Positions 36,190 to 37,727 of a stretch of DNA of 64,000 bases are shown piece after piece (positions within the stretch are counted from its first letter, which is position 1; the number at the start of each line of letters is the position of its first letter). The position numbers and the translations under genes are program-made. Under the pieces are notes generated by a model. It did not search any database, was not told where the DNA came from, and saw only the letters and a list, made by a program, of their open reading frames with translations. The stretch is from IMG/VR virus record IMGVR_UViG_3300003877_000001, positions 186,001-250,000 of that record. One strand, given 5' to 3'.

Positions 36190-36858
36190 TTATTTCTCTT
36201 TTAATAAATACTTATTTGAAATAATTTTGAAACTAAAAGAACCATCCATAGCACGATATACAACACCTTCTCTTAGTGTATCATACAGTTCTGATCTACC
36301 ATCAGCATCTTTTAATAAGAAGTCGAAATCATCAGACAATGATACGTTCACATCTAAAACAGGAACAGTTTCTAATTCTAATTCATTAATAATTTCAATG
36401 AATTCATTATAATTAAGTCTCTTATTTTTACCATCTTGTGCAGTAAAGAACCTAATAGTCTTTTCTTTAAGATTATAGATATTACCTTGAATAGATGTTC
36501 CAATTAATTCACCTTGAAGAACTAAATCCTTATCATGTTTAGCACACCATGCTCTCATTTTCTCTTCCAACTTCATATTTCTTGCTGTTGTAACAAATTT
36601 GTTTTCAGATTGAACAAGTTTATTTGTGGTTAATGTATCTGGAACTTCTATTAATAATTTCAATTCAAGATTGCGTGAAGACACACCATAATCCCAAGTA
36701 GAATCAACATTATCCTGTTTAACACAATGTAAGGTAATTGATGAATTATGAACCAAAATATTATTTGCAAAAAAACAATTAGTATCCTCTACTTCTATAT
36801 CATATAAAAGTGAATCATTTTCAATCTCTTCAATTTTACTTATTTTTAACCGTTTCAT
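36190..36858 (-). CDS. Split-intein C-half (38 aa) fused to C-terminal part of RNA ligase
   Basis: [10 protein letters not shown]...YDIEVED...[10 protein letters not shown]/S, then ligase motifs SSRN, [20 protein letters not shown]. Confidence 0.9.
   Translation of the reverse strand: [222 protein letters not shown]
36745..36858 (-). mobile_element. IntC of naturally split intein
   Basis: Blocks F/G ending His-Asn, with Ser+1. Confidence 0.9.
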
Positions 36859-36947
36859 TTAATTTTTCTTTAAATAATTTATATATTGATTTATTTTTAT
36901 TATATTTAATATGATATTGTGGTATAAACTCAAAAGTTGGAAAAAAA

Positions 36948-37727
36948 CTATTCTTTTAATATGAAATCTTTTGTTGTTAATTCATCAGTTCTTCTATAAC
37001 AATTTAATTCTGGAAGCCAAACCATATGATTTCCAGTTAATTTAATTATTGTTCCATCTGATAATGTAAGTTTAAACCATTTTTTCTTTCCTCTTTTTGT
37101 TATTGAATGATTCTTTATCTTTTTATAACAAATTTCGTTTTTTACAATGTTATATGATTTAACATTTAATTCTAATTTTTTTTCACAAATATCTTTAATA
37201 GTTACGTTACCAATATCAGTATTAATTATAGTCTCTTCATCTAAACAACCTTCAAGTTTTTCAGACCTATACACTAATTTTTCTTTCCATTCTGGTAATT
37301 TATCAACCAAATTTTGGATTCTTTCCTCGCCACTTTTAGTACAGAAAGTTGGAAATCTACTTTTAGCACTCATATCTTCAGGAACGGGCGGTTCATATTT
37401 ATACACACCAATAGCTTCTGTTAAATCAGTATCTAATAACAAATTTAAAGGTAACATAAGTCCCTGACTTACAGTCCCTCTCAACTTAATTGTACGGATT
37501 CTAAGGAATCCCCTATCAATATCTTTTTGATTCTTGAATAGGTGATTAGACCAATCTTTATGTGGTATCATTGAGTCTATTTCAAAATAAATTCCCCATT
37601 CCCCTTCTTGGAATTCATCCTTTTTAACGACACATTCCCATCCATCTACTGTCGCTTTTTCGATTTTATCAGCATTAGGAATTGGCGTTAATTTACTTAC
37701 TTTTCTTAATGTTACTAATTTTCTCAT
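36948..37727 (-). CDS. N-terminal part of DRB0094-family RNA ligase fused to split-intein N-half (99 aa)
   Basis: IPNADKIE...GWECVVKK...YFEIDS, LRGTVSQGL, motif I EKLEG, then intein CLDEET...LTGNH. Confidence 0.9.
   Translation of the reverse strand: MRKLVTLRKVSKLTPIPNADKIEKATVDGWECVVKKDEFQEGEWGIYFEIDSMIPHKDWSNHLFKNQKDIDRGFLRIRTIKLRGTVSQGLMLPLNLLLDTDLTEAIGVYKYEPPVPEDMSAKSRFPTFCTKSGEERIQNLVDKLPEWKEKLVYRSEKLEGCLDEETIINTDIGNVTIKDICEKKLELNVKSYNIVKNEICYKKIKNHSITKRGKKKWFKLTLSDGTIIKLTGNHMVWLPELNCYRRTDELTTKDFILKE
36951..37247 (-). mobile_element. IntN of naturally split intein
   Basis: Block A Cys1 (codon 37247-37245) and block B TxxH (TGNH). Confidence 0.9.

Follow-up and report, generated by a model that had tools for sequence, protein, structure and literature searches.

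An RNA ligase of a hydrothermal-vent phage divided between two genes, probably by a naturally split class-1 intein

Two adjacent genes encode one RNA ligase and the two parts of one intein

We analysed a 64,000-nucleotide (nt) stretch of phage DNA, hereafter the window, that comprises bases 186001-250000 of the 325,854-bp virus record IMGVR_UViG_3300003877_000001, which CheckV rates as complete. The phage was recovered from a hydrothermal-vent metagenome. Its sequence has a G+C content of 27.9%, and among its other genes are rIIA/rIIB-like, tail-fibre, endolysin and tRNA-His guanylyltransferase genes. On the minus strand of the window, two adjacent open reading frames (ORFs) together encode a single RNA ligase, and each is fused to one part of an intein: the N-terminal part (IntN) ends gene 1 and the C-terminal part (IntC) begins gene 2 (Table 1). 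An earlier annotation made from the sequence alone (the original prediction) had described this layout as a 99-amino-acid (aa) IntN with Cys1, TGNH and the ending FILKE, an 89-nt AT-rich spacer, and a 38-aa IntC followed by Ser; every detail was correct. The ORFs, the ligase domains and the intein residues also support its broader proposal that the ligase gene has been fractured in two by a naturally split class-1 intein.

Table 1. Coordinates of the ligase locus and of other features in the window.
Feature	Position	Strand	Description
Gene 1	36948..37727	-	259 aa: ligase residues 1-160, ending SEKLEG, then the 99-aa IntN (residues 161-259)
N-extein	37248..37727	-	Ligase residues 1-160: N-terminal OB domain and first part of the nucleotidyltransferase domain, through motif I KLEG
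Lys157 codon	37257..37259	-	Predicted adenylylation site (lysine of motif I); the intein begins four residues later
IntN	36951..37247	-	99 aa: Cys1; block B T71-G-N-H74; conserved P79, L81, C83, R85
Gene 1 stop codon (TAG)	36948..36950	-	2 residues past the end of the family IntN profile match; the usual split point of the family
Spacer	36859..36947	-	89 nt, 88% A+T, no endonuclease gene
Gene 2	36190..36858	-	222 aa: 38-aa IntC ending ILVHN, then Ser39 and the remaining ligase
IntC	36745..36858	-	38 aa: block F Y19-D20; block G H37-N38
Ser+1	36742..36744	-	C-extein nucleophile; native Ser of ligase KLEG-SS
C-extein	36193..36744	-	Ligase residues 161-344 of the predicted spliced product; remaining nucleotidyltransferase motifs
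Gene 2 stop codon	36190-36192	-	
tRNA-His guanylyltransferase (Thg1-like) gene	46145-46969	-	9 kb from the ligase
Transposase-like gene	14920-16515	-	531 aa
rIIA/rIIB homologues	7878-11497	+	
ATCCTAWACGTATAAG sites	5414-5429, 5971-5986, 7820-7835, 18563-18578, 21653-21670		Repeated 16-nt motif
ATCCTAWACGTATAAG sites, continued	22562-22577, 25097-25114, 27003-27018, 47074-47089, 60826-60841		

To classify the exteins we compared them with domain models and solved structures. The N part carries the OB domain PF21189 (3.5e-32) and the C part matches PF09414, RNA_ligase (5e-15). The Naegleria ligase NgrRnl (PDB 5cot) aligned with the N part over chain residues 4-175 (E = 1e-32) and with the C part over residues 219-338 (E = 2e-13), including the C-terminal motif blocks. 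In the first of these alignments the KLDG/S of NgrRnl falls on KLEG/C, which places the intein directly after the Gly of motif I, four residues past the predicted adenylylation Lys. Both K157 and G160 are almost invariant in our 144-sequence alignment A1. The equivalog model TIGR02306 scored 118.7 bits on one half and 31.5 bits on the other, each below the curated cut-off of 151.15, which applies to a whole protein, because the gene is split; intein-less full-length relatives, 51-82% identical to the window exteins, are named TIGR02306 by the Joint Genome Institute. Judged from these matches, the enzyme is of the Rnl5 type (DraRnl/NgrRnl), a predicted nick-sealing RNA ligase. It shares with NgrRnl (PDB 5cot) and DraRnl (TIGR02306) the OB and nucleotidyltransferase domains, the motif I pattern KxDG and the conserved C-terminal motifs. 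However, those characterised enzymes are single polypeptides while the window ligase must be assembled post-translationally.

A second, uninterrupted ligase-family gene (PF09414, 210 aa, motif EKLDGEN) is found elsewhere in the same genome at G000:C1:136995-137627 (L024:1390-2022). Neither a kinase nor a phosphatase was found among the ten scanned ORFs that neighbor the ligase, and the window contains no tRNA genes.

The two intein parts were recognised by separate models: TIGR01445 (intein N-terminal region) gave 35.5 bits on IntN (cut-off 24.5) and TIGR01443 (intein C-terminal region) gave 22.2 bits on IntC (cut-off 15.6). PF14890 (Intein_splicing, 155 positions) matched IntN with positions 7-93 and IntC with positions 122-155, and this complementary coverage suggests that the two are parts of one HINT domain. 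The split falls where full-size inteins hold their endonuclease. Alignments A1, A3 and A5 all show an invariant Cys1 (residue 161 of gene 1). In the IntN alignment T71 is invariant and H74 is kept in at least 90% of sequences, and in the IntC alignment (22 sequences) Y19, D20, H37 and N38 are all invariant. The pair therefore has each of the defining residues of a class-1 intein, namely the block A Cys, the block B TxxH, the block F Asp, the block G His-Asn and the +1 Ser, and it has the arrangement of a naturally split one, with the halves on two same-strand ORFs and each fused to the matching half of the ligase. The window IntC is 68-74% identical to IntC alleles at the same site in other ligases, and no relative found exceeds 52% identity to the window IntN.

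The spacer shifts the reading frame between gene 1 and gene 2, and it contains stops in the frames of the genes ahead of the new Met. Since gene 2 lies in another frame, read-through cannot join the two genes, and we rejected both read-through and frameshifting as ways of producing a single chain. The start context of gene 2 resembles that of other genes of the phage. A Shine-Dalgarno core precedes only 2 of the 44 ORF starts in the window, and the leaders of the window genes are A/T-rich. The rarity of Shine-Dalgarno cores suggests a host that initiates translation without Shine-Dalgarno pairing, a pattern that we take to be Bacteroidota-like.

The source run had also been assembled a second time, and in that assembly a 31-kb Logan contig with a word depth of 18.6 agrees with the locus over 3 kb with 0 differences. 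The reads behind both assemblies are the same; the agreement thus excludes an assembler slip but does not amount to an independent sample.

Intein-less relatives and a sister phage show the empty site

The predicted spliced product has 344 aa, and the ten closest intein-less ligases have 338-354 aa; they are 58-82% identical to the window exteins in the N part and 51-78% in the C part. All ten contain an uninterrupted EKL[E/D]GSS (seven with KLEG and three with EKLDGSS[IV]T). The original prediction had held that splicing would rebuild KLEG-SS beside the catalytic Lys, and this is what the empty sites look like: EKL[E/D]GSSIT runs on uninterrupted in the ten intein-less relatives and in a sister phage.

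The sister phage, L010, is represented by a Logan contig from a second run of the same study, with its ligase locus at L010:309-2776. Its ligase is also split, although 24 codons upstream, at a site after KTDEER that we call site a; site b, after KLEG, is empty. In the window ligase the reverse holds, with site a empty and site b occupied. At the L010 insertion the +1 residue is Cys, which replaces the Ile/Val of ER[I/V]QNL. The L010 intein is homologous to that of the window (43% identity in IntN, 54% in IntC), but its block B reads TGNE and not TGNH, and its halves flank a 323-aa ORF with DUF7487 repeats and a Vsr-like core. Sister phages with homologous split inteins at two sites thus offer matched occupied and empty alleles for studying homing and the origin of split inteins.

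Between the two phages the exteins are 87-88% identical in DNA. The ratio of non-synonymous to synonymous divergence (dN/dS) is 0.20 for the N part and 0.17 for the C part, with dS 0.42, which indicates that both extein pieces are under purifying selection. The 24 codons between sites a and b stand apart from this pattern, with 63% amino-acid identity and a dN/dS of 0.61 as compared to about 0.2 elsewhere. This divergence is compatible with co-conversion around the homing sites, in a stretch that is short.

One split-intein family occupies motif I of several kinds of ligase

A search of 1.84 billion cluster representatives identified 538 relatives for IntN (E<=1e-3); at the stricter threshold of E<=1e-10 the number of protein clusters was 255. 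Among the best 150 relatives, 142 end no more than 8 residues from the end of the IntN match and only two are contiguous. In 128 of these 150 the intein follows K-x-[D/E/H/N]-G, the ligase motif I, and in 9 it lies at site a. The hosts are mixed. A Pfam scan of 144 relatives found 57 with the Rnl5 OB domain, 13 ligases of the T4 Rnl1 type, 3 NAD-dependent DNA ligases and at least one ATP-dependent DNA ligase. This mixture of hosts at one motif indicates that a single split-intein family has spread into one and the same active-site motif of ligases of several kinds. The motif-I family is large and apparently undescribed, and we consider it worth describing in its own right.

For IMG/VR we used a profile of the IntN-only alignment A3, which recovered 70 loci. 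These form about 49 IntN clusters, and about 43 of the clusters contain both halves. A scan of IMG/VR with the whole N protein returned just three intein-less ligases, and DNA and protein searches of the GenBank phage collection matched only the extein part of the ligase, with no intein-bearing relative.

Several members of the family depart from the common form. A subgroup with K-x-H-G/C hosts (P0130, P0146 and similar sequences) has the block B variant TGNN instead of TGNH. On the Logan contigs L017 (709-4606) and L018, an Rnl5 ligase is encoded in three pieces with split inteins at both site a and site b; each intein has its own endonuclease gene, and the 163-aa middle gene consists of an IntC, a short extein and an IntN. 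P0236 is a comparable middle piece of a NAD-dependent DNA ligase (LigA), with an IntC, 21 extein residues and an IntN.

The window locus lacks the endonuclease gene found in most relatives

In all seven relatives that we inspected singly, the intein halves are separated by an ORF of 322-342 aa with DUF7487 and Vsr-like sequence. These ORFs share their DUF7487 repeats and Vsr-like core with known Vsr-like homing endonucleases (PMC2677866; I-Bth0305I, PMC3239194). Unlike in these relatives, no such gene is present at the window locus, and a profile of the endonuclease found no match in the 89-nt spacer. The original prediction was therefore right to remark on the missing homing endonuclease, which sets the locus apart from all seven of these loci and from most of those in IMG/VR.

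The roughly 43 IMG/VR clusters with both halves fall into distinct arrangements. In about 34 the gap has the size of an endonuclease gene (830-1400 nt), and two have a gap of 384-394 nt that contains an endonuclease remnant of 100-131 aa. In five the gap is 66-158 nt, one of these with a 49-aa endonuclease-like remnant, and one or two are contiguous. The 89-nt gap of the window belongs to the short-gap class, which accounts for about one cluster in eight. For intein biology, the collections thus span endonuclease-bearing, truncated, endonuclease-less and contiguous arrangements of one family.

We searched the spacer for traces of a lost gene. Its 3' half (about 36860-36912) aligned with the last 59 nt or so of the L010 endonuclease gene with a score of 29 (shuffle p 0.002), and the 3' end of this gene was the best of eight targets. 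Comparison at the protein level gave p 0.004-0.014. The 5' part of the spacer had no significant similarity to the endonuclease leaders of relatives (p 0.07). These alignments are suggestive only: the 3' half of the spacer is a likely relic, at most about 55 nt long, from the 3' end of a gene for a Vsr-like homing endonuclease. Our confidence in such a relic is modest because the spacer DNA is so A+T-rich.

Elsewhere in the same genome there are two free-standing Vsr-like genes of 573 and 590 aa (G000:C1, about 49570-51291 and 61546-63318). Both encode DUF7487 repeats, the core EFNGLY[WY]HSD and an extra C-terminal domain, and they lie between unrelated genes and not in a fractured gene.

The family is closer to NrdJ-1 than to gp41-1

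The original prediction had called the intein gp41-1-like. In single-sequence searches, gp41-1 was indeed the best solved match of IntC (E = 3e-4 over 35 aligned residues). For IntN, however, gp41-1 was found at E = 0.47 as compared to 6e-3 for Npu DnaE, and NrdJ-1 was not listed even at E<=10. Profiles changed this picture. With the IntN family profile, NrdJ-1 was matched at 5.5e-14 and DnaE inteins at about 1e-9, while gp41-1 was absent at E<=0.01. The IntC profile matched Spl DnaX (1.5e-9), gp41-1 (1.9e-8) and NrdJ-1 (1.4e-7).

For a structural comparison we modelled the contiguous natural member P0223 (residues 99-236) with alignment A5. The model is a HINT fold with a predicted local distance difference test (pLDDT) score of 92.6, and confidence is lowest at the position where the family is split. 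A single-sequence AlphaFold model of a contiguous relative was unusable (pLDDT 36). Template modelling (TM) scores of the P0223 model against solved inteins were 0.77-0.88. The closest was the NrdJ-1 fusion (TM 0.87/0.80, 34% identity), and gp41-1 ranked 20th, with 22% identity. By profile and by predicted fold, then, the family is nearest to NrdJ-1 and not to gp41-1.

Comparison with known inteins, which the original prediction had proposed as a check, supports a real class-1 split intein and limits the resemblance to gp41-1 to IntC. What stands is the match and the acidic charge of IntC; the IntN similarity, the fold rank, the host and the site all speak against it. The window IntC resembles gp41-1 because it is acidic. 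We rejected membership in the gp41-1 family, as neither the helicase host and site nor similarity in both halves was found.

The likenesses and differences can be set out for each known system. NrdJ-1 (PDB 8ubs), the closest solved relative, is like our family a canonical class-1 split intein that is split at the endonuclease loop, but its host is a ribonucleotide reductase and not a ligase, and its IntC profile match is weaker than those of gp41-1 and Spl DnaX. gp41-1 (PDB 6qaz, 6riz) has an acidic IntC ending in HN, as does the window intein. On the other hand, gp41-1 interrupts a DnaB-like helicase, and its whole fused chain has 128 aa, with IntC at 92-128, while the window IntN alone has 99 aa. 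The DnaE split inteins (Npu, Ssp), the second-best matches of IntN by profile and fold, are likewise class-1, naturally split and without an endonuclease between the halves. Their halves, however, lie far apart in a cellular genome, while those of the window are 89 nt apart in a phage and have the opposite charge polarity (+5/-4).

Dassa et al. (2009, PMC2677866) described split-intein "fractured genes", the Vsr-like endonuclease family, an endonuclease-less gp41-7 locus and a DNA-ligase host. The hosts in that study were gp41, IMPDH, DnaE, NrdA, NrdJ, DNA ligase and terminase; RNA ligase was not among them. The window locus shares with those fractured genes the two co-oriented ORFs with intein halves in a phage housekeeping enzyme, and with gp41-7 the lack of an endonuclease; it differs in its host, an ATP-dependent Rnl5-type RNA ligase (PMC2677866). 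RtcB-type ligases with ordinary inteins have been reported in actinobacteriophages. None of the papers covered by our literature search connected an ATP-dependent RNA ligase with a split intein, and candidate phage papers mention inteins and RNA ligases separately. Since fractured genes have been known since 2009 and RNA ligase is not among their hosts, the window intein is an element of a known kind at an apparently unreported host and insertion site.

The charge polarity of the window pair is inverted

DnaE split inteins combine an acidic IntN with a basic IntC, and most members of the ligase family share this pattern. In the window, the net charge is +5 for IntN and -4 for IntC; the mean for IntN in the family is -7.4, and IntC in the family is neutral to basic. 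A basic IntN with an acidic IntC occurs in only two of 53 distinct pairs, the window (+5/-4) and L019 (+9/-8). Both carry a basic strand in place of the WYEIELEDG of the family. In the window IntN this is the basic patch KKKWFKLTLS, where relatives have DWYEIELE, and it is matched by an acidic strand in IntC.

Across the 53 pairs the net charges of IntN and IntC are anticorrelated (Spearman -0.47, p 4e-4), and this holds without the window and L019 (-0.41, p 0.003). The anticorrelation is evidence that the halves co-evolve. It could be speculated that the window intein is a natural charge-swapped member of its family and would be orthogonal to its own relatives, provided that electrostatics steer pairing as they do in engineered charge-swapped inteins; we hold this view tentatively and would sooner bet against it. 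If it were true, an inversion of polarity could keep several phage split inteins from cross-reacting, for example in the three-piece ligases. The inverted polarity does give a sequence-based reason to expect orthogonality of the window pair, and the suggestion of the original prediction that this may be a new orthogonal split intein is plausible, given also that the identity of its IntN to relatives does not go beyond 52%. For protein engineering, a compact Cys1/Ser+1 pair of 99 and 38 aa with the native junction G/SS would be a candidate for orthogonal trans-splicing.

A selfish split intein is the most likely explanation

We consider it about 85% probable that the locus contains a genuine naturally split class-1 intein, a selfish element inserted right after motif I (K157-L-E-G160) of an Rnl5-type ligase. 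Gene 1 and gene 2 are probably co-transcribed and would be translated separately. We infer that the two intein parts, of 99 and 38 aa, then come together as one HINT domain and splice in trans: Cys1 would form a thioester, Ser+1 would attack it, Asn38 of IntC would cyclise, and an O-to-N shift would leave a seamless 344-aa ligase. In the unspliced state, one polypeptide would carry the adenylylated lysine and another the remaining catalytic motifs. For the phage itself, a nick-sealing RNA ligase would therefore depend on post-translational joining.

With respect to history, we infer an order of events in which a free-standing Vsr-like homing endonuclease gene entered the endonuclease loop of the intein and split it, creating a fractured gene of the kind that most relatives have. 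A later deletion of the endonuclease gene in the window phage would have left the 89-nt spacer.

Several points weigh against this interpretation. The structural model is that of a relative whose IntN is 46% identical and not of the window's own pair. The charge correlation ignores phylogeny, and the spacer, whose DNA is very A+T-rich, gives a modest relic signal (p 0.002-0.015). The dN/dS values average over the whole divergence from L010, so a recent inactivation could still be concealed in them. Read support for the locus comes solely from the sample behind the assembly, and no RNA run turned up that holds the stretch in a search that covered any kind of run and was not aimed at RNA.

One alternative, put forward in the original prediction, is that splicing gates RNA repair. 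Trans-splicing would then be conditional, for example on redox state, temperature or relative expression of the halves, and would switch repair on. The separation of the active-site lysine from the other ligase motifs in the unspliced state would suit such a switch. A redox trap is conceivable too, as there are non-catalytic cysteines in both halves (C21, C40 and C83 in IntN, C28 in IntC); C83 is almost invariant in the family and C28 is common among same-site alleles. However, we found no sign of regulation. The promoter/terminator scan was at chance level (18 sites as compared to 16.7 expected) and detected no terminator. The spacer RNA is predicted to be unstructured, less structured than its shuffles (folding z-score +1.9), and therefore does not form a hairpin of the kind described upstream of the endonucleases in fractured genes. 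In addition, the closest ligases are intein-free, the intein of the sister phage occupies a different site, and most alleles come with a homing endonuclease. Intein-free, endonuclease-bearing and endonuclease-less alleles thus coexist, as is typical of a selfish element. This pattern of presence and absence points to a mobile element that is tolerated because it splices and not to a conserved regulator, and we consider a regulatory gate improbable.

Another possibility is that the locus is a decaying relic on the way to pseudogenisation: after loss of the endonuclease, the halves would have ceased to splice or the phage would have ceased to use the ligase. In favor of decay, the homing cycle passes through loss of the endonuclease before the intein itself is lost, and the genome has the second, uninterrupted PF09414 gene. 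Position 27 of IntC is Asn in the window while many alleles have His; this position is variable, however, with H, N, K, R and E all found among otherwise intact alleles. Both ORFs are intact, all catalytic residues of the intein and all motifs of the ligase are kept, and dN/dS is 0.17-0.20 on both extein pieces. We consider decay a little less probable still than a regulatory gate.

Finally, we give practically no credence to a contiguous mini-intein broken in silico, an error that the original prediction had singled out as fatal to its claim, even though the locus comes from a metagenome contig and the sole run fully holding the stretch is its likely source: an independent assembler produced the identical 3-kb stretch at depth 18.6 with the split kept, the break is not a point error but comprises a stop codon, 89 nt that include stops in the frames of the genes, a frame change and a new Met, and 142 of the best 150 relatives, which come from many other samples, have their stop there too. 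The artefact was rejected because the second assembly is identical and the split point is common to relatives. A split intein that splices and persists as a selfish element remains the best account of the locus.

Other elements of the phage genome

The phage is generally rich in inteins and endonucleases. A 1368-aa ORF for a SNF2-type helicase on the minus strand (G000:C1:302292-306398, read as L101:2293-6399) has intein signals at about aa 180-450 (LAGLIDADG) and at aa 620-1029. Nested in the coding region of the second of these inteins, on the same strand and in another frame, is a 312-aa DUF559/Vsr-like ORF (L101:3363-4301). This nested arrangement could represent a stage between contiguous and split inteins. 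The large subunit of ribonucleotide reductase (1220 aa, G000:C1:128821-132483) contains a LAGLIDADG intein at about aa 319-671, and a UvrD-type helicase (806 aa, C1:72277-74697) has an intein match at about aa 254-547. Together with the ligase intein, these matches indicate a phage with at least four or five inteins.

The window also contains a repeated, partly palindromic 16-nt motif, ATCCTAWACGTATAAG. It occurs 12 times with no more than 2 mismatches, two of the sites being counted on both strands, as compared to 0.06 occurrences expected. In the three genes that we checked (21011-21649, 24671-25093 and 26476-26997) the motif ends 5 nt before the start codon, and it may be a phage promoter or operator.

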